Origin: Mobula hypostoma
Lineage: Eukaryota
Reading direction: 5' to 3'
Length of the DNA: 64,000 nucleotides
NCBI RefSeq assembly: GCF_963921235.1
Contig: NC_086101.1
Span: 28,954,001 to 29,018,000 of the forward strand
How positions within the stretch are numbered: the stretch's first letter is position 1; every line of letters begins with the position of its first letter. The notes under the pieces were generated by a model. It was given only the letters and a program-made list of their open reading frames with translations, ran no database searches and was not told the origin of the DNA. The translations under genes and the position numbers were made by a program. This document shows positions 4,190-38,814 of this stretch, piece by piece.

Positions 4190-5715
4190 TTGGGTGGGAC
4201 CCAAGCGTCTGTTAAGGTTTCCTTCTTGTTTTTTTGTTTCCTCTTTTACTGTACTATTTAAATGGCTGTGATGCGCTCTTCGTGCCAGATGTTGGAGAAC
4301 TGGGAGACCCAGAATCTCCTGGAGATCTACATCTGCATGAAATGCATCTGCCTGCAGCTCCTTGAAGACCGTGTTAGGGATCTGGAGCAGCAACTGGATG
4401 ACCTTTGGCTTGTACGGGAGAGTGAGGACATAACTGATCAAAGTTACAGGAAAGTAGTTACCCTGAAATTGCAGGTGAATAGCTGGGTGACTGTTAGTAG
4501 AAACGGAAATAGGCAGTTAGAGCAGAGCACCCCTGCGGCCATTCCCCTCAAAGGGTGGTGAATTTGTGGAATTTGTTGCCACATGCAGCTGTGGAGACCA
4601 GGTCGTTGGGTGTACTTAAGGCACAGATTGATAGGATGTTGATTGGACATGGCATCAAAGATTACAGGGAGAAAGCCAGGAACTGGGGTTGAGGAGGAGA
4701 AGAAAAAGTGATCAACCATGATTGAATGTCAGAGAAGACTTGATGGACCAAATGGCCGAATTCTGCTCCTGTGTCTTACGGTCTTATGGATACTGGATCT
4801 GCTGTTCGGGAATGATACAGGGCAGGTGACGTAAGTTTGTATAGGGGAACATTTTGTATCCAATGCCCATAATGCCATTACTTTCAAGGTAAATATGCAA
4901 AAAGGAAGGTCTAGTCCACGGGCTGAGATTCTAAATTGGAGAAAGGCTAATTTTGATGGTATAAGAAAGAATCTGGTAAGTGTGGATTGTGAATTGCTGT
5001 TTTCTGACAAAGGTGTACTTGGAAAGTGAGAGGCCTTCAAAAACAAATTTTGAGAGTACAAAGCTTGTATGTACTTGTCATATAAATGGTAAAGATAACA
5101 AGTGCAGGGAACCTTGATTTTCAAGAAATATTGAGGCCCTGGTTAAGAGAAAAAAGGAGGTGTCTAGCAGGCACAGGCAGGGAGGAACAAATGAGGTGCT
5201 TATGGAGTACAAGAAATGCAAGAGAACACTCAAGAAAGAAATCGGGAAGGCTAACAGAAGACATGAAGTTGCTCAAGCAGAGAAGGTGAAGGAGAATCCC
5301 GAAGGATTCTATAGATATGTTAAGAGCAAAAGGATTGCAAGGGACAACATTGGTCCTCTGGAAGACCAGAACAGTAATCCATGTGTGGAGCTGAAACAGA
5401 TGAGGGAGATCTTCAATACATTGTTTGCATCTGTATTTACTCGGGAGACAGACATCGAGTCAATAGAAGTTAGGCAAAGCAGCATCAACTTCATGGACCC
5501 TTTGCAGATTATAGAGGAAGAGGTGTTTGTTACCCTGAGGGAAATCAGTGTGTATATAATCCCAGGGCCTTACAAGGTATTCGCTCAGACCCTATAGGAG
5601 GGAAGTGCAGAACTTGCCAGGGCCCCAGCTGAGATATTTTAACAACAGGAGAGGTACTAGAGGACTGGAGGATAGCCAATGTTTTTTCTGCTGTTTAAAA
5701 AAAGGCTATAAAGAG
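4190..5715 (+). mobile_element. CR1 LINE fragments (ORF1 piece and ORF2 pre-RT region)
   Basis: ORF 4262-4561 (C..C..LQLLEDRVRDLEQQLDDL) and ORF 5160-5597 (KVKENPEGFYRYVKSKR) are typical CR1; a short CR1 3' fragment is nested at ~4570-4790. Confidence 0.8.
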
Positions 5716-6274
5716 AAACAAGGAAGAGCTGAGAGTCCTCCTCGACCCAACCAGTGATATTGACAAGGCAATAGCAAAGGCTGACACTTCTGTCATAATA
5801 GCAAACAGTACACATGATCCAGGGAAATAACCGCATTAGACCTTAGAACAGAAAACATTACATCACTGCAATAAGCCCTTCAGCCTATAATGACTGTGCT
5901 ATTCATGATACCTAATTAAACTAAATATCTGTCTGAGCATGGTCCCTATCCCTTCATTCCCACAGGTCCATGTGTCTGTCTCAATGCCTTTTAATGACCA
6001 GTATGATGTCTGTTTGCACCATCACGCCTGGTAATGCATTCCAGGCACTTATCAGACTTAGCATATTAAAAAAGAACAACTCCTTTAAACTAAAGTGATG
6101 CCCTCTAATATTTGACATTTCTAGGCTGGGAAAAAGACTGACTACCCTCTCTCTGGTGTTGCTGAGGATTATATAAATGCCCTTCAGGCTTACCATGCCT
6201 CCAACACTCCAGAGGAAAGAACACGGATCTGTCCAAACCACCAGCAGGGATAGTGGGCATACTTACACCACTCT

Positions 6275-6828
6275 ATGAACCTCAGATTAATTTTTAACTC
6301 TACGTCAACCCAAATTGCACCAATATACAGGGGTTTCTGTTCCTATTTTTAAAAAAATGTTGGACACTCCCAATCTCATATTAAGGGAAGAATTCTTCTT
6401 AGGTATCCGGAGTTCACAACAGGAATTCACTCTTCCAGTCAGGTCTTTCCAAATGCCCAGTAAAACTTTCACTGCTTTATCCCACCAACTTGCCTTGGCA
6501 GTAGTTCCTCACACCAATGGTCTGATATACAGTATTGCATTGGCGTTAGGGTTGGGAAGAGTAACTCAGGTCAAGTAGGGCTTTACAAATGAGAAGTTGA
6601 AACTTCAACACACCACAACACTGAAACCTGATCCCTGAGTAAGATGTAAGAAAAAGTTATAACATTGCAAAACAGACGAGCTGTAAAGTGGCAGAAGATT
6701 CAGCTAAGCATTTCTCGCACTGGAGCCAACACTAAGCTTGCTTAGGTGTTGAACCATTAATCACAAAACCAGGCAGAGGATCCAGCTTGTGTTCAGAGCT
6801 GAGCTTGAGATTTGGGCCAAACACCCAC
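6275..6828 (-). other. Putative 3' UTR exon of MHC class I-like gene (copy 1)
   Basis: Acceptor cttctcacttttcttttgcAG at 6830-6829; alignable with 35105-35649 including a 28-nt identical block (6604-6631 = 35429-35456). Confidence 0.6.
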
Positions 6829-6913
6829 CTGCAAAAGAAAAGTGAGAAGAGATTGGTTGAGCAATACTGTGACAGCAAGCAGGATTAGTGAAAGGACCTG
6901 CGTGTTTACCCAC

Positions 6914-7026
6914 CTGTACTAAAGTCTTGACTCTCTCCTTGCTGCTCCTCTACACCACTTTAACCATCATCGTAAGTGTCGCCATCAGCCCCAGCAAAGG
7001 ACCTGCACCACGAGGCTCCCCAGCTC
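6914..7026 (-). CDS. MHC class I-like C-terminal exon, (G)AGEPRGAGPLLGLMATLTMMVKVV*; GPI-signal-like; stop at 6952-6950
   Basis: Phase-1 AG acceptor at 7028-7027, donor cag/GTGGGT at 6913; 113 nt, same length and stop position as paralog 35845-35733. Confidence 0.75.
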
Positions 7027-10001
7027 CTACTAACCAAGTAAAGATTGGTAAATTGGTAATATTTTAAATTGTTGTCACATGTACTGAGGTACACTGAAAA
7101 ATCTTTGTACTGCATGCCATCCACAGATAATTGCATTACAATTGCACATTGAGATAATACAAGGGGCAAAAATAGCAGAATGGAAAGCAACTTGTAACAG
7201 TTACAGAGGAAGTAGAGAGCAGGCACACAGTAAGGAGCAAGGGCCACAGTATGGTTGATCGTGACATCAAAGGTTAAACGTGCCGTACTATGGAACTCTA
7301 CAATACTGTTATAACAGCAAAATAGAAGCTGTCCTTGCTCATCAGCATGTGCTTTCAGGCTTTCGTACCTTCTGCTCAGCAGAAGGTGGGGGAAGAAGAA
7401 AGAATTTATGGTGCAGGCGATGTCTTATTCACTGGAGCTTAGGAGAATGGGGTGATCTTATGCATATTAAGGAAGGAAGGAAGTCATTAAACTGGAAAAG
7501 GTGTACAAAATATTTGCAAGAACGTTGCCAAGAAAGATACACTTGAATTAGAAGCGGTGGGGGGGGGGGGGGTAGCATAGCTTGGCATTATTTTCCCTTG
7601 AATGTAAGAGGTTGAGATATATAGAATAACGCATAAAATCATACGGAGCATAGACAGGATGAATGCACAATCTTTTTCCCAGGATTTGGGCATCAGGAAC
7701 TTTAGGACAAAGGTTTAAGGTGATTAGGGAAAAATATAATAGGAACCTGAGGGCCAGCATTCTCAAGCAGAAGTTGTCAGCACAGGGAAGGAGATGCAAG
7801 AGAAAGTGGTTTTGGCAGCTACATTAACAACATTTTTTAAAAAAATCCCTGGAACCAGTAGATAGACAGGAAATGTTTGGTAGTATATGGGCCATGGTAG
7901 GAATCTTGGTTGGCATAGACCAGTTGTGCCGATGGCCTGTTTTTGTTCCGTAAGGGTCTATGACTTCTCTGAATATCAGTCATTTCTCAGCCAGGCAGTG
8001 GCCATTGGACAGTCAGGCCTTGACCCACAGGCCCAATCACTTCTCAGCTGTTTCTTTCCTTGAGCGTCTATTATGTTTCTTTGGCCCACAACTCATAATT
8101 GCTTCCTACGACTGAACACAAACAAGAGAAAATCTGAAGATACTGTAATCTTTCAAATAATAACTTTCAGCAAGGACATGGGACATGTTTTTTGAAGAAA
8201 GAAACTTTCAGAGGCATGTAAGAGAAGAATGGAGCTACTTGATCGGCTCTTTCAAAGTGATAGACAGGGTGGTAAAGAAAGCCTACAGGATTTATTAATC
8301 AGGGCATAAAATATAATTTGTTTCATTTAGAGATACTGTACAGACCAGCCCCTGCTAGACCAATGCACTACACCATCCAACAACCCACCTATTTAACACC
8401 AGCCTCATCATAGAACAATTTACAATGACAAATTAACCCACTAGCTGGTACGTCTGTGGACTATGGGAGGAAACCGGAGGCACACAGAGGATATCCAGTC
8501 AGTTCATGGAGAGAACGTACGAACTCTTACAGACGGCATTGGAACTGAACTCTGAACTACACTACCATGGTGTTCTGTGAAGCTCTGGTACAGTTTTACT
8601 GAGGAGATGCATCATCGGGTCATTCAAAGAGGTAGGTATAGTGATGAACAAAGTGTACAGGATACGAGTGTTCATTAATATGGGCACAGAATACAAGACC
8701 AAGAAAATTATGGTACAGCTTTACAAAACATTACCGAGGCTACATCCCAAGTATTTGATACATTTTTAGTCACCAGCCCAGAGGAACAATTTGATTGCAT
8801 GGGACAGAGTACACAGGAGATTCACCAGGATTTTATTGGGATGCAATGTTTCAGTGAAGAGGCCAGGTTTGATTTCCCTGAACGGGAGGAGGCTGAGAGA
8901 GGAGCTGATGGCATTATACAAAATTGTTAGGGGCATTGAAAGGAAAAATGTACAAAATGCTGAAAGAACAAAGCTTTTTTTTACTGCAGTAGTTTGTATA
9001 CTGCTCCCACTTAATTTCTTTTATAAAACAGCAGCAAACTTTTCCCCACAGCAGAGGTGCTTATTACTGTAGAGGTAGGTTTAAAGCAAGGATTAAGAGA
9101 TTTAGAGAGAATAGAGAGAAGTTTTTTTTTTAATTAATGGGTTAGCGGGAGATGGGAATGCTCTGCCTAAGGGGCTGGTATAGGCAGACACTCTCACAGC
9201 GTTTAAAAATTATTTTGATATCTACGAAGTATAAGAAGCTGCAGAGAATTGTTGACACAGTCAGCTCCATCATGGGCAGAACCCACCCCACCACCAAAGA
9301 CATCTTCAAGCGGTCGTGCTTCAAGAAGGTGGCATCCATTACTCAGGACCCTTGCCATCTGGGACATGCCCTCTTCTCCTTTAATGCAATCAGGGAAAAG
9401 GTACAGGACTCACAAAGAAGACACTAATCAGAAACATCTTCTTTTCTTCTACCATTCACGAATGGTCATGAACCCATGAACACAACCTCATTATTCCAAT
9501 TTTTGCACTAATTACTTCATTTTATAATTTATGTTATCTCTCAGTCATGGAGCACTACAGCACAGAAGCAGTCCATTTGGCCCATCTAGTCCGTCAAAAT
9601 GCCATTCTGCTTATTCCCTTCAATCCACACCTGGCTCCAGACCTACATACTCTTCTCATCCACGCTCCTTGGGCTGGCAGTCTTCCCTCCAGCTAGCAAA
9701 TCTCACTAATAACTATAGTATCATAATTTCATGAGTTGGTCCATGTTCTAAGCTCATACGCCTTTTATGTCTTTGCACTGTACTGCTGTTGCAAAAGATC
9801 AATTTTCATATCATAATTCTGACAAGCACTTGAATCATCGAGGAAGAGAAGGCCGAAGTACAGACCAAGTACTGGTTGGAGCAGACTGGCACCAGAGGGT
9901 CAGCATGTATGTGGTGAGCCAAATGGCCTCCTTCAGTACTGTATGAATTTATGAACCACCACAACAGAATGAAGCAAATTCTGTACCGTACAATGACCTA
10001 C

Positions 10002-10276
10002 CTCCCTGCATCATCAGTGCCCCAGCAGGCTGCTGTGCTTGACATGACAGGTATAAATGTTCGTATCATTATCCTGCAGCTCAATGACTAATTCTATCCA
10101 GTATGTATCATTGTAGTTTGGTAGCACGGTCACCTCGTAGCCCTTGGAGACAACCTGTCCATTCTTCAGCCAAGTGGCGTTGATAGCACGGGGGTAGAAG
10201 GGAGTGATGATGTATGCGAGACTCTCACTCTCAGTAGCTCTTGGCCTCTTTTTCAACAACTGAACCTCTGGAGCAA
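10002..10276 (-). CDS. MHC class I-like alpha3 (C1-set Ig) exon; frameshifted in the last codons
   Basis: APEVQLLKK..FYPRAINATWLKNG..LPNYNDTY..YTCHVKHSSL; acceptor ttcttccccAG, donor gag/GTAGGT; 275 nt (1 short of 276), giving TGA at 10016-10014. Confidence 0.92.
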
Positions 10277-11569
10277 CTGGGGAAGAATGAAGAATTAACA
10301 TCACTAACTCAACACAAACTTATGTTATCTTACCATTACAAATGAAAATCACAGTATCCAAGAGTGGGATTCTTACTCTTTACTGCCTCAGACCAGGACC
10401 TACCTCACCATTAATCACTATCCTGCCCGAAATCATCTCCTCAGCTCAAGTCCATGCAGACCATAGCCAGCATTAATTTTCATTCATCTGACAGGCCTAG
10501 ATCAAGGTTACAGCCACCATTACCAATCTTTATGTCACCCATAGTCCCAAGTCAATATTACCTCGTATTCCAAGATTGATCATGCCGTCATCACCCCAAA
10601 TTAAGTTTAGTTTACCAGTCTTAATTGGGAGATCCTTTAAAATTCCTGATCAAGAGATGCCCTCAATGTCCCGGATTGGGAGATCTGTTACTGTGTCTAA
10701 ATAGAAGTTCCAACACAATCCCTGACTTGGACATCATTAGTCACCTTCAGTTGAGGTATCCTTCACCCCAGATAAGGAGATCGCTCACCATTCAGAATTG
10801 GGAGATCCCCCAGTGTCGCAGATTGGGACCTCTCTCATCTTCTTAGACCAGAACACTGCTCACCAAATTTGGTCATGGCACTTTGATTGTGAGTCCCCTC
10901 ATTGTGCTGAATCAAAGGCTCCCTCACAAACTCAGAATCAGGCTGCTCCCGTCCATTTGTGTCAAGACACCCCTGAACATCTCGGATCAGGAGTCCATCA
11001 ATTCTCTGAAGCAGGAGTTCCCTCACAGAGCTTACGTTATGTAATCAGATGTTCCACTTGCCTTGCCTTTGAAGCTCCTCTCTGCCAAGCCAAAGACCTT
11101 TCTGCAAATACTGAATGCAGCTACTGTTCAGCATATAAATTTCAGGAATATCAGCAATATTAACTTGCTGAAGATAATCATTGACCAACATCAGGACACC
11201 AGTGGTAATACACTTCCCGGTGATGAAGTCACAAATGAGCTCTCCCAAATCTCGGCAGCCAATCTTGAGGAAGGTTTTGAATGTATTTGCAGACTGCGTG
11301 CAGCCCAGAAGCCCCTGGATGTATCTGATGCCTGGAAAGGACCAACAGGTTAATCTGTGTTAGTGGCTGAATATTCGAATTCTTCAACCATTCCCACCTG
11401 CATAATGTCCTGCTAAACATGTAAATACCATGTGCACTGTCTTGTGCAACACTTTCTCAGTAGGGCGAAGTATTTGACATGTCCTCTTTGACCCTCAGTC
11501 ATGCTTATTGATGTACAATATAGGCATCACAGCTTGGTATGGCATCAGGTCTGCTCATGATCACAAGAA

Positions 11570-11774
11570 GAAGAAGAAGAAAGCCCGAGTGGAGTCATTG
11601 GGACGCTGTCATGATGGTGTTTTTTTAGCCGGCTTTCTTATTTTTAAAGAGGCCGAGTTGCTAGCTCGACGCTCAACCCAGCATGAATGGAAAGCGTGCA
11701 AGGGAGACGGCTGGATTCGAACTTGGGAGCCTTTGCTCAGAAGTTCAGTGCTGATGCCACGAGGCCACCAGCTA
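11570..11774 (-). mobile_element. tRNA-derived SINE with (TTC)n tail and 17-bp TSD
   Basis: A-box TGGCCTCGTGG (11767-11757), B-box AGTTCGAATCC (11723-11713); TSD GCTCATGATCACAAGAA at 11553-11569 and 11775-11791. Confidence 0.85.
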
Positions 11775-11904
11775 GCTCATGATCACAAGAAACTGCAAAA
11801 AGTTATGGATACAGATCAGCACACACAGTCTCCCCGCCTCCATACATTCTACCTACATTTCTCGCTGCTTCAGTAAATCAGACAACAAAATCAAAGACCC
11901 CATC

Positions 11905-14000
11905 CATCCACCAGCTTTAAATTGGGGTAGGGCAAATTATAAGCGCATTAGGCAGGTACTAAGCAGCATTAATTGAGACACTTTTTCTCTGGCAAATCTA
12001 CAATAGACATGTGGAGTGTGTTTAAATATCAATTTCTAGAGTACAGGAAAAGTATGTTCCTGGTTAGAAAGAAGGACGGGGATGAAAAGATAAGACAACC
12101 TTCCATGTCCGGAAAGGTAATGAACTTAGACAGGAAGAAAAAGAGAAGTTATATAAAGTTTTGGAAGTCAGAATCAAACAAAGCATATGAGGAGTATAAA
12201 CAAGCCAGAAAAGAATGAAAGAAGGGAATTAGGGAAGCCAGGAGGGGCCATGAAAAATCCTTGACAAGTAGGATTAAGGTGAATCCCAAGGCATTCTACA
12301 CATACATCATAGGATAAAAGGATAAGTAGCGAGAGAGTGGGACTACTCAAGGATGAAGTGGGAAATACTTACTTGGATGCTAAGAATGTGAATGAAGTAC
12401 TTAATAAGCACAGTGCCTCAGTATTTACCGGAGAAAAGGATATGGAGGACTTGGAGATCAGCACTGAGTGCAAAATACATTAGGGCATTTAGAGGTTAAG
12501 GAGAAAGCGGTGTTGGGTGTCCTAAATAGGAGTTCCCACACTATCTGTGATTTGGACATCATTAGGAGCATTAAGGTGGATAAGGCCCCGGGGTTTGATG
12601 CGATTTAGCCCAGATTCTTGTAGGAGACGAGGTGAGATTTCTGGGCCCTTGACCAGTATCTTTGTGTCCTATCTAGCCACAGGCAAGGTTGTAGAGACTG
12701 GTGAGTAGTTAATGTTGTACCGCTATTTAAGATGGGAACAAGGGAAAATCCTGGGAACTATAGACTGGTGAGTCTCACATCAGTTGTAGGGAACTTGCTG
12801 AAGAGAATTCTTAGGGAAGGGATACATCAGCATTTGGAAACTTATGGCTTAATTAGGGAGAGTCATCGTGGCTTTGTGTGTGGCAAGTTGTGTCTTACCA
12901 ATCTAACTGAGTTTTCTTTGATAAGGTGACAGAGAGATTGATGAAGGTAGGGCAGTGGAGGATTTCAGTAAGGCATTTAACAAAGTCCCTCATGGGAGGA
13001 TAATCTGGAAGATTAAGGTCTATGGTTTCCATGGCAAATTGGCTGTTTGGATTTGGAACTGGCTTGCACGTAGAAGACAGAGGGTGGTGGTTTAAGGGAC
13101 CTATTCGAGTTTGAGGTCTGTGATTAGTAGAGTTGCACAGGAATTTGTGCAAGGACATCTGCTGCTTGTGACATATATAAACGACCAGGCTGAAAATGTA
13201 GATGGATGGGTTGGTAAATTTGCGGTTGATACCAAGATTGGTCGAATTGTGGATAGTGTAGACAACTGGCAAAGGTTACAGCATAATATAGGTCAGTTGC
13301 AGAAAAAATAGTTGGAGTTTAACCCAGATAAATGTGAGGTGTTGCACCTTGTAGGGCAAATGCAAGGATACAGTAATGTTAAGGGCAATGTCCTTAACAG
13401 TGTTGCTGAGCAGAGAGCTCTTGGGTGGGACCAAGTTCATAGCTCCTTGAAAGTGGCTACGTAGGTCAAAAAAGTGGTTAAAATGAAATGCTTGCTTTTA
13501 TTAGTTGAGGCAATGAGTTCAAAAGTTAGGAGGTTATGTTACAATTTAATAAAACTCTGGTTCGGTCACATCTGGATCCGGCCAACCCACTTGAGGAAGG
13601 ATGTTGAGGCTTTGGAGAGGATGATGAAGAGGTTCACCAGGATGCTGCCTGGTTCAGAGGGCACGTGCTATCACAAGAGGCTGGATTAACATGGGTTTCC
13701 TTGGAGCATCGAAGGCCAAGGGGTGATCTGATAGAGGTTAAACAGGGACGTGATTAGAGACCATCCAATTCCCAGGGTTGAAATGCCTAACACCAGAGGG
13801 CATGTATAAAAGGTGAGAGGTGTTGGTTCAAGAGGGATGTGAGGGGTAAGTCTTTTCTTTACTCAGAGTCATGGATGCCTAGTATAGTGGTAGAGGCAAA
13901 TACATTAAAGGACTTTAAGAGACATTTGAATAGGCACATTGATATAAGGAGGATGGATGTATATGGATGTGGTGTAGGTCGGACGGATTAACGTTTGGGT
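11905..14000 (+). mobile_element. CR1 LINE 3' portion with degenerate RT
   Basis: ENPGNYRLVSLTSVVG, KFAVDTKIG, KDVEALER..KRFTRMLPG motifs; CR1 3' UTR. Confidence 0.88.
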
Positions 14001-15014
14001 GTTTTTGATTAGTTTTTTAGCCGGTTCAGCACAACACTGTTGTGCTCTTCTGTGTTTGATGACATTCTCTCTTCTTCCCCATCCCATAGGGCAGAAGATA
14101 CAAAAGCCTGAAAACCTATATCACCGGGGTCAAGGGCAGCTTTTATCCTGCTGTTATCAGTCTATATATAGACCCCTGCTACAATAATATGAAATCCTGA
14201 CCTCACAAGCATCCGTATTATGGCTTTACACCTTATGGTCTGCTTTCATTGCACTTTCTCTATGACTGTAACAATTCACTCTGCATTCTGTTATTGCTTC
14301 CTCTTGCACCTCAATGTACTGTGTTAACGAAATGACATGTACAGATGGTGTGCAAAACGAAGTTTTTCACTGGACCTTAGCAGATACGACAATAACAAAT
14401 CAATTTACCAATTTACCATGAAGCACACAAAGCAATGGCAAAGAGCATGGGATCACAGTGTTCTGCATGCAGTGTGTGGTACACATGACAGGATCAGTAA
14501 TGAACATGAGCATGAGAGTGTGACACAGTGGAATATTGATGGTGGAGGGGGTGATCTGTACAGAGTGTACATCATTGCATGATGTAATGCAGGGGTCATG
14601 TTGAAGGACTGTGTACTGCACATCAGTGTGTGAAGGTAGCACACCAACATCTTTGCTTAGAAGTCTAAGGAGATTCAGCATGTCATTGAAAACTCTGACA
14701 AATTTATAGAAATCACATCCTAGTATTGAAACTCTCTCCCATTGAGGACATTTACCAGTGAAGGTGACATTCTTCAACAGGGACAACCACCATCAGGGCC
14801 GTGTCCTCTTCCCCATGCTGCCATCAAGCATGAGTTCCAGTAGCCAGAAAACCCACACCTCAAGGTTTAGCACCTTTCCCTCCACTGCCATCAGGTTCTT
14901 GAACCAAGCTGAAAAACCACAACATTACTTCTCATGATTTTTCTCCCAATTTGCATAAGTATCATTATGTTTTTGTACACATGCAAATTACACGTAATAT
15001 ATTTGAATTTTACT

Positions 15015-15174
15015 TTATATTAACTTATGTTTGCTTGACCCGTGCGAAGCCAGAGAGGCAGTGGGTCTGATTCTCATTATTTCTCGGAGGAGATCAGTGT
15101 GGAATGAGAACTGGGTTCTCCGAAATAGATTCTCAGTTTTTTTTGAAGGGCAAAATTTCTCTTGCAAATGTGGG
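15015..15174 (-). pseudogene. Probable decayed MHC class I alpha2 exon (N-terminal half)
   Basis: After acceptor ttccatctgtAG, 200 nt downstream of alpha1: PHLQEKFCPSKKTENLFRRTQFSFHTDLL..PTASLASHGSSKHKLI*, echoing H.LQ...GC / QYAYDG.D / WTA........K.KW; out of phase with alpha1 and ends in a stop. Confidence 0.4.
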
Positions 15175-15374
15175 CTACAGATGGAATGCTTTTAATTGAA
15201 GGTAAATATTTGTTAGAGGATGTCGGGAGGGCATATAACCCTTGAAAGATTTGAAACCAAGGATAGGAATTTTAAAACTGATACAACCTAATTGGCTCCA
15301 TTGAAAGGTCAACGTGTTTTTAGTGTGCAAGTCACTGTGAGCCTCGAAGAACAGTGGAGATCAAAGACACGTAC

Positions 15375-15623
15375 AAAGCATTGAGGCGAATGGAGTCAGA
15401 TTAGGAGGAAGTAACTTTTTAATTGAGTCCGGGATCTCTTTCTGGTTTTTCCAGTCGTTAGCTGAAAAGCCGTCCATGATCCACTGTTGCTTGGCTTCTA
15501 CCCTCTGGATGGTGCTGTCATAGTAGCATATCTGCAGGTCATCCAACATCCCAACCATGAAGATGTATGGCAGCTCAGGAATGTTTATCGAATGGAGGTA
15601 GAAATATGTCAAGCTGTGGGAGA
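15375..15623 (-). CDS. MHC class I-like alpha1 exon (83 codons, open)
   Basis: VSHSLTYFYLHSINIPELPYIFMVGMLDDLQICYYDSTIQRVEAKQQWIMDG..; strong polypyrimidine acceptor ttttttttcAG; phase-1 donor t/GTACGT. Confidence 0.92.
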
Positions 15624-15763
15624 CTGAAAAAAAAGAAGAGAGTGAGAGAGGAGTGTGAGAAAATAACTAAGGATGCCCTCCATTTATAAGGCACAACTCT
15701 GGTGGAAAACTCTCCACTTGCCCAAATTAATGCACAGGCACACAAATTAGACACCCACCTCAC

Positions 15764-15818
15764 CCCTGTGATTGGCTCCCCATCCACGTGGAACCACCAA
15801 CACTAAAACAGGCCTCAT
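15764..15818 (-). CDS. Putative leader exon of the MHC class I-like gene, MRPVLVLVVPRGWGANHR
   Basis: ATG at 15818, phase-1 donor g/GTGAGG at 15763, 140-nt intron to alpha1 keeps frame; hydrophobic core is short. Confidence 0.6.
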
Positions 15819-18345: not shown

Positions 18346-20887
18346 AATGCAGTTTGCATCAAATTAAAACAGCTGTTGAGCATCCGGTAAGTGTTTCTGC
18401 ATTCCTAGTGTCCACATAGCATGGCCACAACTCACTAATCCTAAATCATACATCTTTGACAATGGGGGCAAAGCACAGCATCCGGAGGAAAGTAACAAGG
18501 TTACGGGGAGAACATACAAACTCCTTACTGACAGCAGTGGAAGTTGACCCCCGATCTCACAGTTTTGCCAACTGCTACACCAACCATCTTGAATTGGTGT
18601 CCCAGCTGTGGTTTTGTGGGTCACACGCTCACCTCCCACACTAAAGATTGTCACATTTCTGCCCCGCTTGATACTTAAGCCTCTGAGGGAACAGTGCATT
18701 GGGAGAGGTGTTCGGTTCGGTGGAGCCCCTGTCTGCCTCTGCAGGTAAACCATGGCTCTAATTAGAGAGTTACCTCCCCCACACAACATTCATAGGAGCT
18801 CTCAACTAATGTCACCAAAAGCCAAACAGGACATCACAAAATACTTCAAAGGATCTTGATGTTTACAGATTAGCAGCTGCGTTTCCTCAGTTAATGACTA
18901 CATTCAGGGAAAACACCATACATTTGGTCAAGATATTGTCACAATCGAGCAAGCATCATTTTTGACGAATGAGGGTAAAGTTCTTAGCATCGTATAGCCA
19001 GACCGCACAAAGACAGGCCATTTGGTCCATTACAGGCATGCGGACCAATGAGGAGGGTGAGATTTATTTAAAGCTAATTTTTTACCTTTAATTGATCAGA
19101 TTAAACTTTTGTTTACTAAATGGTCACCAACATCTTTGTCTTTGATTGGTCGGATTAATGCTATTAAGATGATTATTTTGCCTAAATTTCTATATGTATT
19201 TCAATCGGTTCCAATTTTTACCCCCAAATCTTTTTTTGATAATGTTGATTCAAAAATTTCCTCATATACATGGCAGAAAAAAAATCCTAGGCTAGGTAAA
19301 AGGTATTTACAGAAATCTAAAAAAGAGGGGAGGCTCACCCTCCCGAATTTTAGCTTTTATTATTGGGCAATTAATATCCAATACTTAAAATTTTGGTTAC
19401 GAGATTGGGATGCAACTTCAAGTCCACATTGGGTAAATCTTGTATGTAATTCATTACAAGGGTCTTCTTTGGGTTTGGTTTTAGGAACTGTGCTTCCTTT
19501 TATTTCTTCTACATTGTATAAACAAATGAATAATCCAATAGTTAAGCATACTTTATGTATATGGTTTCAATTCCAAAGATTTTTTGGGTTCAATCAATTT
19601 ATTTTAGCAAGCCCTATTATATCTAATTTCCTTTTTCAACCTTCCACTATGGATCAAGCTTACTTTGATTGGAAAAATCAAAGGTATAGTACGTTTTCGT
19701 GATTTATTTTTGGATAATTGTTTCATGTCCTTTGATCAACTTTCCAATGAATATAATTTATCCAGATCTCACTTTTTTAGATACCTACAGATCAGAAACT
19801 TTTTAATTACTGTTTCTCCTAATTTTCCACACTTATGTCCAATGGATATTTTGGAAAAAATTTTAGATCTAAATCTCTCTCAGAAAAGTGTTGTAGCAAT
19901 TATTTACAACATAATTATGAATTTATGTCCTGATGTTTCCAATAAAATTAAAACTGATTGGGAAAGAGAATTTAAGATTACTATACCGATTGAAAAATGG
20001 GAAAAATTCTTCAATTGGTTCATTCATTCTCTATATGTGTTGATACAGTTTAAAGCAGTGCACAGGGCTCATATGTCCAAAGATAAACTATCTCGTAATT
20101 ATTCTTATATTAATCCTATATGTGATAGATGTCATTCCAAGATAGCTTCTTTAACTCACATGTTTTGGTCATGTCCTTTGTTGGAAAAATATTGGAAAGA
20201 TATTTTTGATATTACTTCAATGGTTTTGAATACAGAATTACAACCTCATCCAATTACTGCTATTTTTGGATTATCAATGATAGACTCAAATCATTAAACC
20301 TCTTCAGCTCATCAGATGATTGCATTTCTTTCTTTAATGGCTAGAACATCCATTTTGCTGAATTGGAAAGAGATTAACCCTCCTACTGTATTTCACTGGT
20401 TTTCACAAACCATGTTGTGTTTAAATTTGGAAAAAATTAGGAGTGTGGTTTATGACCCTTCCATTAAATTTGAAAAAACTTGGAGGCCATTTATTCAGCA
20501 TTTTCATTTGATGTAATTTGACCATTTCCAAACTTATTTTACTTCTCTGTAGTGTTGGTTGAGAGGAACGGAGTCATCGACACTAAGGTTTTCTTTTCTT
20601 CCATTTTTACAGAGTTAAAATTGCCCATGTCTTTTTTAGTTTAGTTGATTAATTCTGTTTGAATTTTTTTTGGGGGGGGAGGTTTGTTTTTATTTTTTTT
20701 CCTTTTTCATGATTTTTGTTTAGATAATTTTTTTTGTCCTGTGTTATACATTGGTATCCTACATGATTGGGTATTTTGTCAATGAAATACTATTTGGTTT
20801 TATAATTACCCATCTTAAGTATAACAATGTATTCCCAACAATTTTGTATTATTGCTATTGTAACCTTCTGTTATATTGGCTCGTGTA

Positions 20888-22867: not shown

Positions 22868-23830
22868 TAGTGTAATGGCATTGTGTAAAGTGCATAATTG
22901 TATAACAAAGGATTCTCTAATTGTTGATAAACATTCATGGCAGATGTGGTAAATTGTACAGCACAAACTGAAATAGGACAAATATTAAAATTATGTGAAA
23001 AGCAGAAGAGAAACATTGACATAAAATGCTAGGAGCTATTAATGTTGCCTTTCAAGGAGTAAAAATGTTCACATTTCAAAAGAGAGTTGTTAATGGCATT
23101 TAATCTTACAATGGAATTCTAGAAGCCTGTTAGCTAGTGGTCAAGAGGTTAAGAAATTTATTGCAGATTTCCCAAATAAACCTGACGTCATGTGTACAGG
23201 AAACCTGGTTGAAATCCTGTCAGTTTCAAAATACAAAGTTATGTTAACATAAGCCATGATCCGAAAATGGGCAATGGAGGAGTGGCTACATTTGCCAAAA
23301 ATGGGATAGCATATACAGTAGACTTTTGGAGTTTGGGGTTGTTTATGAGTCAATTGTGGTTGAAGTTTAGGGAAGCTGAGATACCTCAACATGTGTAGCA
23401 GGATATTGCAGATCTTTTACCAGTCTGTTGTAGCAAGTCTTCTTTGCTGCTTTTCGTTGATGGAGCAGCATTGGAGCTGGTGATGCAAAAAGACTAAATA
23501 AACACATCACAAAGGCTGGATCCGGCCTTGGCTACAAACCAGACTCTTTTGACTAAATGGTGGAGAGGAGGTCACAAAACAAACTGTTATCCATTATAGA
23601 CAATCTGGAACATCCTCTCCATTACCTACGGAATAAGTAGCGGAGCACCTTTTCAAATAGACTCATTCAGCTCTGCCGTCATAAGGATTGCTACAGAAAA
23701 TCTTTCCTACCAAATGCAATCAGCATATACAACAAACAACAGGAATTCTGCAGATGCTGGAAATTCAAGCAACACACATCAAAGTTGCTGGTGAACGCAG
23801 CGGGCCAGGCAGCATCTGTAGGAAGAGGTG

Positions 23831-23870
23831 CAGTCGACGTTTCAGGCCGAGACCCTTCGTCAGGACTAAC
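23831..23870 (-). ncRNA. Minimal hammerhead ribozyme motif
   Basis: GTTAGTC-CTGACGA-agggtctcggcct-GAAACGTC-GACTG on minus strand. Confidence 0.8.
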
Positions 23871-24744
23871 TGAAGGAAGAGTGAGTAAGGGATTTGAAAG
23901 TAGGAGGGGGAGGGGGAGATCCAAAATGATAGGAGAAGACAGGAGGGGGAAGGATAGAGTCAAGAGCTGGACAGGTGATAGGCAAAAGGCGATACGAGAG
24001 GATCATGGGACAGGAGGTCCGGGAAGAAAGACAAGTGTGGGGGGGACCCAGAGGATGGGCAAGAGGTATATTCAGAGGGACAGAGGGAGAAAAAGAGTGA
24101 GAGGAAGAATGTGTGCATAAAAATAAGTAACAGATGGGGTACGACGGGGAGGTGGGGCCTTAGCGGAAGTTAGAGAAGTCGATGTTCATGCCATCAGGTT
24201 GGAGGCTACCCAGACAGAATATAAGGTGTTGTTCCTCCAACCTGAGTGTGGCTTCATCTTTACAGTAGAGGAGGCCGTGGATAGACATGTCAGAATGGGA
24301 ATGGGATGTGGAATTAAAATGTGTGGCCACTGGGAGATCCTGCTTTCTCTGGAGGACAGAGCGTAGATGTTCAGCAAAGCGGTCTCCCAGTCTGCGTCGG
24401 GTCTCGCCAATATATAAAAGGCCACATCGGGAGCACCAGACGCAGTATATCACCCCAGCCGACTCACAGGTGAAGTGTTGCCTCACCTGGAAGGACTGTT
24501 TGGGGCCCTGAATGGTGGTAAGGGAGGAAGTGTAAGGGCATGTGTAGCACTTGTTCCGCTTACACGGATAAGTGCCAGGAGGGAGGTCAGTGGGGAGGGA
24601 TGGAGGGGACGAATGGACAAGGGAGTCGCGTAGGGAGCGATCCCTGCGGAATGCAGAGAGAGGGGGGGAGGGAAAGATGTGCTTAGTGGTGGGATCCCGT
24701 TGGAGGTGGCGGAAGTTGCGGAGAATAATATGTTGGACCCGGAT

Positions 24745-26865: not shown

Positions 26866-27162
26866 GGCCCCACCTCCCCCTCGTACCCCATCTGTTACTT
26901 ATTTTTATGCACACATTCTTCCTCTCACTCTCCTTTTTCTCCCTCTGTCCCTCTGAATATACCTCTTGCCCATCCTCTGGGTCCCCCCCCCCGCCTCCTT
27001 GTCTTTCTTCCCGGACCTCCTGTCCCATGATCCTCTCGTATCCCCGTTTGCCTATCACCTGTCCAGCTCTTGGCTCTATCCCTCCCCCTTCTGTCTTCTC
27101 CTATCATTTTGGATCTCCCCCTCCCCCTCCTACTTTCAAATCCCTTACTCGCTCTTCCTTCA

Positions 27163-27203
27163 GTTAGTCCTGACGAAGGGTGTCGGCCTGAAACGTTGAC
27201 TGC
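27163..27203 (+). ncRNA. Minimal hammerhead ribozyme motif (GUU cleavage triplet)
   Basis: GTTAGTC-CTGACGA-agggtgtcggcct-GAAACGTT-GACTG. Confidence 0.75.
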
Positions 27204-27539
27204 ACCTCTTCCTACAGATGCTGCCTGGCCTGCTGCGTTCACCAGCAACTTTGAAGCATATACAACAATTCATCTCATTGCGACAGAACACGCACCCCAG
27301 TACATTCGTCCCTGCTTTATTATTTCATACATTATTATTGCATTTTATTGAACATTGGTATGTTATTATGCTGTACGTTATTGTTAGTTAGTCTGCACAC
27401 TGCTGTGTGTTTTTAAATGCTGCTACTGTAATGAAAGATTTCCCCTCTTGGAATCAATAAAGTACTTATTATTATATAGACCTACTTTGCTAATTTCACA
27501 TGTATGTAAGGTAACGGAACAAATAGTTATCACAAGGCT

Positions 27540-28900: not shown

Positions 28901-29631
28901 ACTTCACAGAGAAAAAAGATCTTTTGGAACCCGCGACAGATCTCAAACGCCAGTTGAACATTTTCAGTGATAATTTTATCCCGAACTTATAGACTCCAAA
29001 AATTCCCCAGTATCTTGGATTTCTTCTGTAGGACACATGAGTGCGATGCACCAGTTCTCCAGTCTAATGGGGGCACGTCTGGGATCTCTAGAAGATTAGG
29101 GGTGAGTTTCCAAAGCGCAACTCCAGACCTTTAAAACCATCACACACCCTCGCCTTACCTGTCTGGCTTCCCGCAACAGAGCAGAGAGACAATATGGTGA
29201 AAAGGAGCGATCCCGGTCCGTTCCAACTCTCCATTGCGGTGTCTCCTCACCTCAACAAATCTACTCGTTGGTCAATAAACTGCTGAGGGCGCAGATAAGA
29301 TTCACGGAGGCAGTTCGGGGATAAATAGTGCCTGCTACAAGGAGCAGCCAGTAAGAACTCCTGGAACTAAAAACCTTCCTGCAGAAATAACCAGCCCGCC
29401 GCTGCTCTGGAGTGTGGAGGGTGGGAGGCGGGGCGGTAGACAGCCGGCCAGGCACAGGATGTGCAGTGGAGGGTGCGGAGCCGAACCACTTCCAGTAAGG
29501 ATGAGGGCACGTGCAGACCGCGACAGAGAGGCGCAGGCAGCAACACCCAGTCACTGACACATATCTGGGCAGGTTTCCAGGACCCTCCCGGGAGATGTTC
29601 ACCACAAACCGTCTCAAGCCGCTGTATAAAA

Positions 29632-35104: not shown

Positions 35105-35649
35105 TATGATTCTCAGATATTTTCAACTCTAATCTCAAACTGAATTGCTCTGTTAGCCAGAGGCTTCTGTTCGTATTTTAAGCTAAATGTTAGACCCTCC
35201 CAATCTCCATTAAGGAAAGAATTACTTTTGGGTCTCCAGTGTCCACAGCATTCCCACTTCCAGTGAGGTACTTCCAATCACCCAGCAAAACTTTCTCTGC
35301 CTGACCCATGAACTTTCCTTGGCCACAGCCCTTCACAGCAATGGTCTGATATATGATATTGATGTTTCAGCTAAAGTTGAGGATAGCAATTCATCTCAGG
35401 TAAGACCTTGTGGATGAGATGCTCAGATTTCAACACACCACAACACTGAAACCTGAATTCCGAGTGAGATGTAAGAAAAAGTTAAAACTGGTAAAAAGGT
35501 GCATTGCAAAGCCGCAGAAGATTAAGCTAATCAGCTTCCATACTGATACAACACTAAGCTTACTGAAATACGTGGTCATTCATAACCAAACCAGGCTGAG
35601 GCTCCACCCTGTGTTCAGAGCTGTGCTTGAGTTCGGGCCAAACACTTAT
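35105..35649 (-). other. Paralogous 3' UTR exon (copy 2)
   Basis: Acceptor ctcatttttcctttgtAG at 35651-35650; alignable with 6275-6828. Confidence 0.6.
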
Positions 35650-35732
35650 CTACAAAGGAAAAATGAGAAGAGATTGGTTGTCCAGTACTGTGACAGAAAA
35701 TAGGATTAGATAATGGATCTGTGTTTACCCAC

Positions 35733-35845
35733 CTGTAGTAATGCCTTAGCTATCTCTAAGCTGCTCCTCTACATCACTCCAATAATTATTGCAAACATAG
35801 CTATGAACCACAGTATGGGACCTGCTCCATGGAGCTCACCGAGTC
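35733..35845 (-). CDS. Paralogous C-terminal exon, (G)LGELHGAGPILWFIAMFAIIIGVM*; GPI-signal-like; upstream exons not found
   Basis: Phase-1 acceptor gggcAG, stop TAG ending 35769, donor cag/GTGGGT at 35732; 113 nt, no indels versus copy 1. Confidence 0.72.
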
Positions 35846-38814
35846 CTGCCCAACAAGTAAAGTTGGCAAATGTTACGTGAACTACAAAGATGATATAGCA
35901 CAAGAGAGGGTGTAGGGGAGAACTGCAAAGTCTGGGTACTTTTGTTTTTGAGGACAATTGAGCAGTTGCAGTTACTTCTTAGGAGCAGAGGATATTAAAG
36001 GGAGATATGAAAAGCTGTAAGGGTCCAGGATGCAGAAGATAGGAAATATATTAGCAAAATAGTCTAAAGTAAAAGGCCGAGATCAAAAATAATCAGCGGG
36101 GTTGGAGGGGAAATAAAACCTTAAGAAGGAATCTCTGGGAATCTCGACAAAATTGGAGATTGCCCTATGGTCCTCATTGATGTGATTAAACTGGAAAATG
36201 ATTATGGGGAAATAGACCATTCGTGGAAGTAGTTTAAAGGCCAGGTTAGAAGATCAGGGTAGTAAATAGGTTCATGAGGTGTTTTGATTGCTGTCCTTTC
36301 TCAGTCATGGTAGCGCCAGCCTGAGGAATAACAAGGACAGTCTGTTTCCCAGTGCACTGTTCTGTGTTTCTTTGGTTTGGGATTTTCCTTTTAACATCTA
36401 AGTCCCTGCTGTTTGTCCAAACACAAGACTCCTGCTGCTAAATTCCAGGCCTTCCAAAACACTCTAAACTCTATTCCTCCACAGGTTTCACAGCCCCATG
36501 CCCATCCAATCACACTTGTCTATCACTTGCTCTGAATTCCTCATGCACACACTAAGAACTATTCTTCCTCCTCATCTATTCTGTGGAATAGGCAGAATCT
36601 GTGTAACGTTACTCAGCTGGAGTTGGGCCTGGGGTGCAGTGGGTAGTTCACAGCAAATGTAACTCTGCATCTCAGACAACAGATCCCTACCTGGGAGGAC
36701 AGAAGAGACTGCAGACGCTGCAAACTGGAGCCACACCCAAACTCCTTGGGGAGCTCATAGTGTTAAGCAGCATCTGTGGAACATTTTGAATCAAATCCAG
36801 ATGAAGGATTTTGACTTGATATGTCAACTGTCCGTTTCCTTCCATACTCCTATCTCTGGAGTCTTTGTTGTTGCACAAAATTAGGTGCAGAACCATGTCC
36901 TGAATGTCCTTACCCAGAGGCCTCGACTACCCTGTGCTGCAAGAAAATATATGTGAAGACAGTACAATATGAAATTTCCTTTTTTTTTGCGGCGGTTGGG
37001 CGGGGAGGAACCTTAATTCCTTTTCTTCCTTGAGGAAGAGAAAGCAGTTCACTGGCACAAGTCCAGAAATTCACTGTGTTGTGCTAACCCTCTCCTTCTA
37101 GAACAACAGCACTACCTTCCACCACTAACAGGAGCCCAAAGACCATGATGTTTTCCATCCCCAGTGAGGAACCAAAGCAATATTCCAATCTTGACACAGA
37201 GAGCTCTGTAATAAGTTTCCCAGCTGCTTGTCACTTCCGTGGGCTGAAAGAGACCATGTATCACAAGTATGTGTTGTGTATGAGGATGCAGCCTGTCTTT
37301 ACCTGTTTGAAGGGGCTGTTCCCTACCCTCCTCATTTAATGTGGTACTTGTAGTATTGTATATAATGAACATACTTCTCTAATTTTGAGAAACACAATTG
37401 TGTTCCTCTGAATTACACCCTGCCAATGCATTGCAACTGACTGCTGATGGAGTGCCATTTCTTCATTGCATTCCTCAGAGATAACAAAGCACCTCTCCCC
37501 GATGAGATGATGTCTGCTCCACTGACTGTGCAATGCTCCTCCTTCAGTACCCCACAACTTCTACCTGCCCCTTCACAGTGCGTGGCCCCACTGACAGTGT
37601 AGTACTCTCTGCGTATCTGAGGATATCACACTACCACCCTCCCTTTGACCACACCACAGTCTCAGATTTGACCTTCCTCTGCACTCAATGATTACATTAC
37701 TTGGGTTCAAAACCAATTCTGACCACCTGTTCTTGCCTTTTCTTCCTCATCTGTCATATTCTTCCTTCTCTCCTTAATATATGAGGAGTGCTTGATCTCT
37801 ATTGACTTGTACTGAATGAAATTCAGAAGGACGGGTGGGGGGGAGGTTGTCAAGGCAGATCGACCCAATGCAAGAGCGCCGTTACCATAAACACAATAAC
37901 ACAAGCAATATTTTCTCAAACTTTACTCTTTATTCATCGTATGCTATGGGGGAAGTTATAGACTGAACTCCCAAAGAGCCAGTCCAGACACAACCCTCCC
38001 CCAAATCACAATTCTTCACAATTTATAATATTAATCATTACATCCACAGGAAATCTTACAATTACACGAGTTAAGACAGTTTTAGAATAGTTTCGATCAC
38101 GTTAATATAGTATTAGATGTAAAATCATCATTGGTTAGTTATAATTATTTTCTGCCACAGCTAGCCTGGATACAACATTAGTTCCTTATATTGACACCTT
38201 CCCCTTTCTCTCAAACATTCTATCCCTTATGCTATCCTTCCCATATTTAGTTATACCTTGAGATGTCCCTTCTGTATGGCTAGATAGAGGACAATGTCTA
38301 ATGCGTTAACTGTCGCTGGGTAGGGTTTCTTTCTGACTTGCCCAACAACAGTAAGCAAAGGTCCTCATAAGGTGATTGATCATTAGCTAATCATTGTTCT
38401 TAGTCTATACTCATATTTACCTGTCCGTCCACTCTGTCAGGGGGATCTCATTGAAATCTGCTCGATACTGAAAGGTCTGGATTGAGTGAACATGGGGAGG
38501 ATATTTTTATCAGCAGGGGAGTCTAGGATCTGAAGGCACACCAGAATAAAGGGACTTCTTTTTAATACTGGAATGAGGAGGAATTTATTCAGCCTGAATC
38601 TGTGGAATTTGTTCCCACTGAGGGCTGTGAAAGCCAAGTTGTTTGGGTATTTAAGGCAGAAATTGATTGGTCCTCGATTGGTAAAGTGGTGAAGGGTTTT
38701 GGGTAGAAGAATGGTGAATGGAGTTCAGAAAATAATCAGCCATAATTTAATGATGGAGCTGAGCAGAAGGGCAAAATAGACTAATTCTGTTCCTATATCT
38801 TAGTCATTGTCATA

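Follow-up and report, generated by a model that had tools for sequence, protein, structure and literature searches.

The 64,000-nt window (the whole stretch of DNA that was analysed, from the lesser devil ray Mobula hypostoma) carries a single gene that belongs to the UFA lineage of elasmobranchs, a group of CD1-like non-classical MHC class I genes. With a probability of roughly 0.7, we consider it a transcribed but recently disabled UFA copy rather than the source of a working anchored protein, in a family whose intact members end in a GPI-type signal; the exon structure, the splicing, the reading frame, the family membership and the conserved C-terminal layout are shown by the data, and the loss of function, the degradation of the transcript by NMD and the GPI attachment of the intact relatives are the predicted components of this reading.

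Gene structure and transcription

The gene (hereafter gene A) lies on the minus strand and runs from 29234 to, at most, 5450. Its features, together with a discarded leader, are as follows (positions of the window):

29159..29234, minus strand: leader exon, MESWNGPGSLLFTILSLCSVAGSQT plus 1 nt, donor G/GTAAGG; matched by tblastn and the family HMM
15764..15818, minus strand: putative leader of the original prediction, MRPVLVLVVPRGWGANHR; unsupported
15375..15623, minus strand: alpha1 exon, 249 nt, phase 1-1; PF00129 MHC_I E 6.9e-6, family HMM E 5e-39
11062..11331, minus strand: alpha2 exon, 270 nt; next intron of GC-AG type, donor AAG/GCAAGT; family HMM E 3e-30
10002..10276, minus strand: alpha3 exon, 275 nt, one below a multiple of three; C1-set E 3.8e-13
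10011..10016, minus strand: actual stop of the gene, TGA TGA, 13 nt before the alpha3 donor
6914..7026, minus strand: connecting-peptide/hydrophobic exon, 113 nt; relic frame (G)AGEPRGAGPLLGLMATLTMMVKVV, stop TAG 6952-6950 (36 nt upstream of the donor)
6829..6913, minus strand: GT-AG intron 3' of the hydrophobic exon, 85 nt
5450..6828, minus strand: 3'UTR exon; RNA contigs at 5727-6822 and depth to 5450, the edge of the stretch examined

The spliced exons translate into a protein identical to RefSeq XP_062905767.1 (P0150), which has 285 aa and the C-terminus HSSLLGH. The leader exon at 29234-29159 is part of this exon set, is 96% identical to residues 1-25 of the Mobula birostris protein P0130, and encodes a hydrophobic peptide that is conserved in the UFA family. 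By contrast, the leader originally placed at the ATG at 15818, 13.5 kb downstream of the one used by RefSeq, is absent from P0150 and lacks a counterpart in any UFA family member. The proposed alpha1 (15623-15375) and alpha3 (10276-10002) exons are real, as their MHC_I and C1-set Pfam matches attest, while the alpha2 exon between them (11331-11062) had been overlooked; its junction (ELQRQ/VAPEV) is the same in P0150, and positions 11065-11291 are covered by RNA contigs.

Splicing at the 3' end could be followed in assembled RNA data. Run searches with the alpha3 region gave shares of at most 0.15, and searches with the 3' end of the gene gave usable runs. The alpha3 exon (10102-10001) is joined directly to the hydrophobic exon (7025-6908; joint 10001/7025), which is joined in turn to the 3' exon (6908/6822), and a single RNA contig links all three. 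The joint across the 85-nt intron is present in the RNA runs X24, X25 and X26 and absent from the DNA run X16. Hence, the anticipated joining of alpha3 to the hydrophobic exon does occur in RNA, albeit in another frame than supposed and with a further exon behind it.

Both C-terminal peptides on which the original prediction was built can be read on the minus strand: the first, AGEPRGAGPLLGLMATLTMMVKVV-TAG, at 6953-7024, and the second, LGELHGAGPILWFIAMFAIIIGVM-TAG, at 35772-35843. The second one, taken at the time for a paralogous gene, belongs to a 3' gene fragment only:

35105..35871, minus strand: second UFA gene, orphan 3' fragment only, with homologous intron and 3' exon; donor CAG/GTGGGTAAACAC, the same as in gene A
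35845-35733, minus strand: hydrophobic exon of this fragment, (G)LGELHGAGPILWFIAMFAIIIGVM, TAG at 35771-35769

The fragment is homologous to 6274-7053 over 786 bp (73.5%), the match breaking off roughly 27 nt before the acceptor, and the family HMM recovered no alpha1-alpha3 exons for it between 35.9 and 64 kb (i.e. in the 28 kb upstream, to position 64000). A second complete UFA gene in the window was considered and rejected, since neither self-tblastn with the alpha1 and alpha3 of gene A nor the family HMM, run on all six-frame segments, found further alpha domains. No flanking marker gene was found in the window, the other large ORFs being reverse-transcriptase fragments or without a Pfam match.

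Family identity

The gene belongs to the elasmobranch UFA lineage. When P0130 was used as a phmmer query, the nurse-shark UFA structure (8gm8_A) was retrieved with E 2.5e-62, as against E 1e-30 for UGA (9ch4_A) and 1e-25 or weaker for other class I molecules; the identity to nurse-shark UFA (8GM8) over alpha1-alpha3 amounts to about 40-46%. UGA (PDB 9CH4) is the second CD1-like shark class Ib molecule with a solved structure, and its much weaker match (27% identity) indicates that gene A is not a UGA gene. A class I fold, with an alpha1/alpha2 platform and an alpha3 domain of C1-set type, is supported by the Pfam matches (MHC_I, C1-set) of the window exons and by Foldseek, whose best match was again 8gm8_A, titled 'shark nonclassical MHC CLASS I, UFA' (E 4e-26, TM 0.72). 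The underlying AlphaFold2 model had a pTM of 0.62 and a low-confidence C-terminus (pLDDT < 50) that is uninformative on the anchor. In the family tree shark and ray clades are separate, and nurse-shark UFA falls inside the former as sister to Chiloscyllium (100/100).

The family, which had been thought possibly undescribed, is thus already described: the UFA lineage was named in Verissimo 2023 (PMC10751288) and in a 2025 review (PMC12562908), which present it as MHC-linked, CD1-like and lipid-binding, and the crystal structure 8GM8 (nurse shark; release 2024) was obtained from a construct without the C-terminus. While these reviews treat UFA as single- or low-copy, it is multicopy in Myliobatiformes, where it forms two sublineages; M. 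birostris has at least 7 predicted products and Hemitrygon at least 6. Gene A itself is truncated.

Disruption of the reading frame

The truncation originates at the end of the alpha3 exon. As this exon measures 275 nt and not 276, its frame runs into a TGA (10016-10014, mRNA position 856) before the junction; consequently the hydrophobic exon falls outside the frame and is not translated, and AGEPRGAGPLLGLMATLTMMVKVV lies in another frame of the mRNA. The phase-1 junctions originally described therefore hold for alpha1 (phase 1-1) and fail at alpha3, and the exon assumed to be the last coding one is neither coding nor last (the 3'UTR exon follows after the 85-nt intron). The last alpha3 beta strand is shortened (HSSLLGH, as compared to HSSLPGALMVQG), and the first cysteine of the alpha3 Ig domain, which at least 90% of the family members have, has been replaced by tyrosine (Cys220Tyr, SLAYIITPFYP). 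Besides this replacement, gene A shows few deviations at conserved positions (6, versus 3 in the intact P0130), and it has acquired an unpaired cysteine at the alpha1/alpha2 junction. We reason that this copy has lost one base close to the 3' boundary of its alpha3 exon, in addition to the first alpha3 cysteine; the GPI-type exon, still spliced in, now belongs to the 3'UTR.

The tail-less GPI-type ending proposed for this gene thus stands for its intact relatives (in 15 species; e.g., P0130 and P0134, in which the signal is in frame with the mature protein) and fails for gene A itself because of the frameshift and the stop in alpha3. Could the stop be an assembly error, or be bypassed, so that gene A would still encode a GPI-anchored class I-like protein? 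The hydrophobic exon is, after all, joined to alpha3 in RNA, its relic frame is intact and matches the C-terminus of the functional M. birostris protein P0130 at 24/25 residues, and the missing base could sit in a GGGG run (about 10020-10023). Against this, the RefSeq protein terminates at the TGA; no insertion or deletion near 10020 was reported in three RNA runs and one DNA run (assembler contigs, in which variants may be hidden, and which, coming from another individual or a closely related species, differ from the window by 1.4-2.4%); and the sole alternative alpha3 donor that would restore the frame, a phase-1 GT, would itself create a stop (T/GA). Moreover, a second M. hypostoma copy (P0143), sister of gene A in the tree, carries the same Cys-to-Tyr change and ends in HSSLLGY followed by a stop. 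The reading of gene A as coding for a GPI-anchored protein is already largely refuted, and we regard it as highly improbable.

Better placed, but still doubtful, is the idea that gene A is alive and that the truncation yields a secreted UFA with no anchor, which would bind lipids in soluble form and is represented by two copies in M. hypostoma. Soluble class I molecules are known elsewhere (e.g., mouse Q10), the transcripts of the gene are correctly spliced, its 285 codons are open with only the 6 deviations at conserved columns, and, although the truncation is common to both copies and their proteins have since diverged by about 10%, gene A has suffered no further disruption. The missing first half of the alpha3 Ig disulfide, the shortened strand and the new unpaired cysteine speak against a functional product, and P0143 additionally lacks half of alpha2. 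The position of the stop points in the same direction. As a rule, transcripts are spared by NMD when the stop lies closer to the last exon junction than 50-55 nt; in gene A it lies 126 nt upstream, so NMD is predicted.

Taken together, gene A has the attributes of an unprocessed, duplicated pseudogene: a reading frame disrupted relative to its intact paralogs (275-nt alpha3, premature TGA) and a structurally essential residue lost (Cys220Tyr), in an otherwise intact and transcribed ORF. A recently disabled copy is hence the reading that we favour.

C-terminal architecture of intact UFA proteins

The ending that gene A has lost was characterized in 25 full-length UFA proteins (15 shark and ray species plus one skate-like sequence), by means of a C-terminal scan with ad hoc rules and an approximate hydrophobicity scale, as distinct from a published GPI predictor. 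In all 25, a hydrophobic run of 10-21 residues (median 15) closes the chain but for the last 0-4 residues, and all 25 have an acceptable small-residue triplet (GVG, GAG or GVS) 4-10 residues upstream of the run (the spacer being 7-10 residues, and 4 in skates), so the part that would be cleaved off comprises 22-27 residues. The control class I chains differ: 9/10 have a run of 13-26 residues and 10/10 have 22-44 residues behind it. By these rules, the intact UFA proteins show the layout of a GPI signal (small omega and omega+2 residues, spacer, hydrophobic end, no tail) and depart from that of classical class I (UAA type), with its transmembrane segment, basic cluster and cytoplasmic tail.

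An intact UFA protein would accordingly consist of a signal peptide, alpha1-alpha3, a Gly-rich linker bearing the triplet, a spacer and a tail-less hydrophobic end. In intact UFA genes, the stop lies in the penultimate exon, directly after a hydrophobic run of about 15 residues; the 36 nt that separate it from the last exon junction fall below the usual 50-55 nt and would be too few to trigger NMD. The GPI transamidase would cut at the triplet, and a lipid anchor would hold UFA on the cell surface.

On these grounds the UFA C-terminus appears to be a conserved GPI-type signal that probably directs GPI anchoring. The competing possibility, which we hold to be quite unlikely, is that intact UFA has no GPI link and the short hydrophobic end stays on the chain, either as a minimal transmembrane anchor devoid of a tail or to retain the chain until it has paired with a partner. 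It draws on the skate UFA, whose 21-residue run could span a membrane, on several members in which a K, R or E lies 2-4 residues short of the C-terminus (possibly a mini stop-transfer), and on the literature that we searched, in which we found no demonstration of GPI addition to any fish MHC molecule and, in full text, no mention of a GPI anchor for cartilaginous-fish class I. It fits poorly with the median run of 15 residues preceded by Pro, with the positive insertion energy predicted for the best 19-residue window in 24/25 proteins (on an approximate scale), and with the retention of the Gly-rich triplet and the 4-10 residue spacer in spite of the sequence divergence between sharks and rays. 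In addition, mammalian class I-like proteins of similar layout (Qa-2, MILL, ULBP1-3) are GPI-linked. A feature search of the Atlas with the last 36 residues of P0134 gave scores of at most 0.81 and was uninformative.

Implications

Recent reviews cite UFA in support of the view that lipid presentation of the CD1 type dates back as far as the MHC, and the way in which UFA is attached to the membrane decides where it can pick up lipids. A GPI anchor would place UFA in lipid rafts and on the recycling route of GPI proteins, rather than on the tyrosine-motif endosomal route of CD1b-d. We lean, with some reserve, towards a broader proposition: that every intact shark and ray UFA is GPI-anchored, that UFA is the oldest GPI-linked MHC molecule known, and that devil rays have derived an anchor-less, possibly secreted version. 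If it holds for all intact members, GPI linkage would have been conserved since before the shark-ray split, and early lipid presentation would have worked without the endosome-targeting cytoplasmic tail of mammalian CD1. The tail-less ending is thus a testable prediction for a lineage with an existing crystal structure.

For gene A, the annotated 285-aa product is derived by truncation, and what looks like a GPI signal is a 3'UTR relic. The window illustrates how such gene clusters shed copies: one copy is frameshifted, and 29 kb away only the terminal fragment of another is left, orphaned.

Comparison with known systems

In mouse Qa-2 (Q7/Q9), an altered transmembrane exon gives a short hydrophobic end with no functional tail and a GPI anchor. 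Qa-2 and UFA resemble each other in retaining further downstream exons as UTR, yet they share no kinship by descent beyond class I membership: Qa-2 arose recently in rodents from classical, peptide-binding class I, while the UFA signal, conserved in both sharks and rays, is carried by a CD1-like platform that probably binds lipids. MILL1/2 and ULBP/RAE-1, class I-like ligands of the NKG2D type that are GPI-linked, likewise combine GPI-type C-termini with MHC-I-like ectodomains; ULBP and RAE-1 lack alpha3, MILL binds no ligand, and neither MILL nor ULBP/RAE-1 has a specific sequence relation to UFA (PDB and Pfam searches returned generic class I matches only). In a language-model feature search P0130 fell nearest to a 'MILL2' cluster (score 0.95), which we record as a lead only.

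A further comparison is with mammalian CD1. According to published work (PMC12562908), the groove of UFA is hydrophobic, resembles that of CD1 and contains bound lipids, and some of the ray members carry the NCBI names 'CD1d-like' or 'CD1c-like'. CD1 molecules possess a transmembrane segment and, with the exception of CD1a, a tail with tyrosine-based endosomal sorting; UFA has no tail, and its lipid loading would thus need a route other than that of CD1.

Gene organization

The two C-terminal peptides of the original prediction are present on the minus strand (6953-7024 and 35772-35843), each directly followed by TAG, and the hydrophobic exons that carry them (7026-6914 and 35845-35733) both have an AG acceptor and share the same strong donor (CAG/GTGGGTAAACAC) 36 nt past the TAG. 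The alpha1 and alpha3 exons proposed upstream of the first peptide were recovered on the same strand through Pfam matches at both, together with an alpha2 exon that was absent from the earlier account. P0150 (XP_062905767.1, M. hypostoma, 285 aa), the RefSeq product of this gene (hereafter gene A), is letter-for-letter the translation of 29234-29159, 15623-15375, 11331-11062 and 10276-10002, into 7026-6914. By this exon match the true leader lies at 29234-29159, and the previously suggested one (ATG 15818) is not the leader of gene A. The alpha2 donor (11060-11061, minus) is GC, not GT (CAAG/GCAAGT), and the ELQRQ/VAPEV junction is the same as in the RefSeq protein.

Features of the window (coordinates, strand where assigned, description)
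29234-29159, minus, true leader exon (MESWNGPGSLLFTILSLCSVAGSQT) of the P0150 exon set, 13.5 kb upstream of alpha1
15623-15375, minus, alpha1 exon, Pfam MHC_I (E 6.9e-6)
11331-11062, minus, alpha2 exon (...CIRYIQGLLGC...NSSCIQYLQKGLWLGREELQRQ), with a GC-AG intron after it
10276-10002, minus, alpha3 exon, C1-set (E 3.8e-13)
861-2578, 23733-24743 and 25559-27254, GC-rich element of 1-1.7 kb, present three times (92-95% identity between copies)
12000-13700, 19665-20294 and 62888-63490, plus, reverse-transcriptase fragments of retroelements

Retroelement fragments make up much of the sequence of the large introns: RT-like ORFs lie inside the alpha1-alpha2 intron, zf-RVT was matched at 19.7 kb and RVT_1 (E 1.4e-19) at 62.9 kb. 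Two copies of the GC-rich element form an inverted pair, ~1.5 kb apart, within intron 1 of gene A. Pfam gave no match to the long ORFs of this element (325 and 321 aa).

Homology between the 3' end of gene A and the locus taken for its paralog spans 786 bp (6274-7053 vs 35105-35871, 73.5% identity) and ends ~27 nt upstream of the acceptor. No alpha1, alpha2 or alpha3 was found between 35.9 and 64 kb (family HMM at maximum sensitivity, all six-frame segments), and we favour an orphan 3' fragment over the 3' end of a gene interrupted by an intron of more than 28 kb. The C-terminus encoded there (...IIFGVM) resembles that of the second ray sublineage of the family.

A premature stop in alpha3

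The alpha3 exon is entered in phase 1, and a phase-1 exit needs a multiple of three; since its 275 nt are not one, the frame reads into two stops (...YTCHVKHSSLLGH TGA TGA, 10016-10011), 13 nt before the donor (GAG/GTAGGT). Downstream, the same frame reads ELGSLVV...stop in the hydrophobic exon, and the GPI-type peptide supposed to be in frame occupies another frame of that exon. At the position of the stop the intact relatives read HSSLPGALMVQG-G-AGEPRG... (family alignment), and gene A has ...QPAGALMMQG in frame +2, which indicates that one base is gone between HSSLL and ALMMQG; the missing base could possibly sit in the GGGG run. An alternative donor restoring the frame was considered and rejected, as the sole in-phase GT in the exon would give T/GA.

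A slip in the assembly could also be held responsible for the stop, but several observations argue against it. The RefSeq protein terminates at the same TGA, and the second M. hypostoma copy (P0143), sister to gene A in the tree, ends in HSSLLGY-stop and shares with it the replacement of the first alpha3 Cys by Tyr (SLPYIITPFYP in P0143 vs SLAYIITPFYP in gene A). Moreover, an RNA contig covers 10001-10102 without insertion or deletion, and the same holds for DNA contigs of another individual or close relative.

Transcription and splicing

For a related sample (another individual or a close species), RNA from three runs and DNA from one were compared with 5450-11400; the organism sampled contains 65% of the 31-letter words (~1.4% divergence). 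Substitutions in the RNA contigs match those in the DNA contigs of this sample (e.g., 6925, 6958, 6964), so the RNA stems from the orthologous locus and not from a paralog. One RNA contig links 10102-10001, 7025-6908 and 6822-6637, and its joint at 10001/7025 bears out the presumed splicing of alpha3 to the hydrophobic exon. A stretch of 85 nt (6913-6829, GT..AG, minus) is skipped in all three RNA runs and retained in the DNA run; hence, the hydrophobic exon is penultimate and is followed after this 85-nt intron by a 3'UTR exon that reaches at least 5450 (RNA contigs). Under the general 50-55 nt rule, a stop situated farther upstream of the last junction predicts nonsense-mediated decay (NMD). 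The stop of gene A, 126 nt upstream, would thus predict NMD, and the TAG of an intact copy (36 nt upstream) would fall within the NMD-safe distance.

Another RNA contig joins 11254 to the alpha3 acceptor side (10278), omitting the second half of alpha2, and the RefSeq model of P0143 (FLKIGCQ/VAPEVQ) has the same skip. In both DNA and RNA, the related sample has CTCA in place of 62 nt of the 3'UTR at 6574-6637, and left of 5727 its contigs diverge completely from the window; both differences are structural (assembly versus other individual or species) and not due to splicing.

Fate of gene A

Gene A makes no GPI-anchored protein, being a transcribed copy with an ORF that stops within alpha3. 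The Ig-domain cysteine is gone, the last strand is shortened and a new cysteine is found at the alpha1/alpha2 junction. Gene A deviates at only 6 conserved columns, and its intact relative at 3, which points either to recent damage or to a soluble product that is tolerated. We consider gene A to be probably a disabled copy; that its product is a functional secreted form is less likely. The original prediction is therefore upheld in part, as the GPI-type ending stands at the level of the family (UFA, an elasmobranch CD1-like nonclassical class I lineage) and not for gene A, the ORF of which ends in alpha3.

The C-terminal signal across UFA

We analysed 25 full-length UFA members (from two species of Mobula, Hemitrygon, Hypanus, Pristis, Narcine, Amblyraja, Cetorhinus, Carcharodon, Mustelus, Pristiophorus, Heterodontus, Chiloscyllium and Heptranchias, plus one skate-like sequence). 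In all of them the hydrophobic run spans 10-21 residues (median 15), mostly with a Pro just before it, and 0-4 residues follow it. The control class I chains (n = 10, same search) have 22-44 residues behind the run in every case, nine of them with a run of 13-26 residues and then a basic cluster (the tenth being a mis-extended model). A triplet with small residues at its first and third positions is located 4-10 residues before the run in every UFA member (GVG in most rays, GAG in the group of gene A, GVS or GLS in lamniform and Mustelus sharks), and the predicted cleaved part amounts to 22-27 residues. Between sharks and rays the run has diverged in sequence and kept its character.

Judged by sequence, the conserved C-terminus is laid out like a GPI attachment signal. 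Tailed orthologs, singled out beforehand as counter-evidence, were absent among the 25 full-length members; Narcine isoforms X2 and X3 (which use alternative exons) and the Scyliorhinus and Chiloscyllium 'hypothetical proteins' (read-through models) were rejected as such. Insertion energy of the best 19-residue window was positive in 24 of the 25 members (on an approximate scale). Intact UFA proteins are most likely GPI-anchored (probability about 0.6-0.7), the alternative being that the C-terminus acts as a minimal, tail-less membrane anchor. GPI anchorage of the lineage is a reasonable and testable proposition, unpublished as far as the searchable literature shows.

The RefSeq model of P0149 (M. 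birostris, 581 aa) consists of two identical tandem alpha1-alpha2-alpha3 units and then one GPI-type ending; it represents either two tandem genes joined by read-through or a genuine tandem-ectodomain chain. P0003 and P0146 (Hemitrygon and Hypanus, 231 aa) are annotated isoforms without alpha2, in which alpha1 is joined to alpha3 and the GPI-type end is kept.

Relationship to known class I lineages

Searched with alpha1, a set of 1.84 billion representative proteins yielded close relatives in rays and sharks only. Named RefSeq proteins, P0150 among them, came from a further search started from the top match and from a look-up of clusters. P0130, the intact relative from M. birostris that shares 92% identity with gene A, matched PDB 8gm8_A with E 2.5e-62 and 9ch4_A with 1e-30, every other class I chain being at 1e-25 or weaker, and 8gm8_A was also the top Foldseek match of an AlphaFold2 model (pTM 0.62). 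The 8gm8 entry (released 2024-11-27) is titled 'Crystal structure of shark nonclassical MHC CLASS I, UFA', 9ch4 is 'UGA', and the nurse-shark protein P0158 is the 8gm8_A chain. The maximum-likelihood tree (30 sequences) separates a shark clade, with nurse-shark UFA, from a ray clade (100/100 support each); the latter holds two myliobatiform sublineages, in one of which gene A groups with P0130 and P0149 of M. birostris and P0001 of Hemitrygon.

The family is thus not undescribed, as had been suggested, but the already-known UFA lineage, described, from unpublished data, as a new class Ib lineage that is CD1-like and lies in the MHC-Ib cluster (Verissimo et al. 2023, PMC10751288). The expansion of UFA in stingrays and mantas appears to lack a description in the accessible literature, and gene A is a new (truncated) member of this known lineage. 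UFA and UGA are described as single- or low-copy and, like CD1d, lipid binding (2025 review, PMC12562908).
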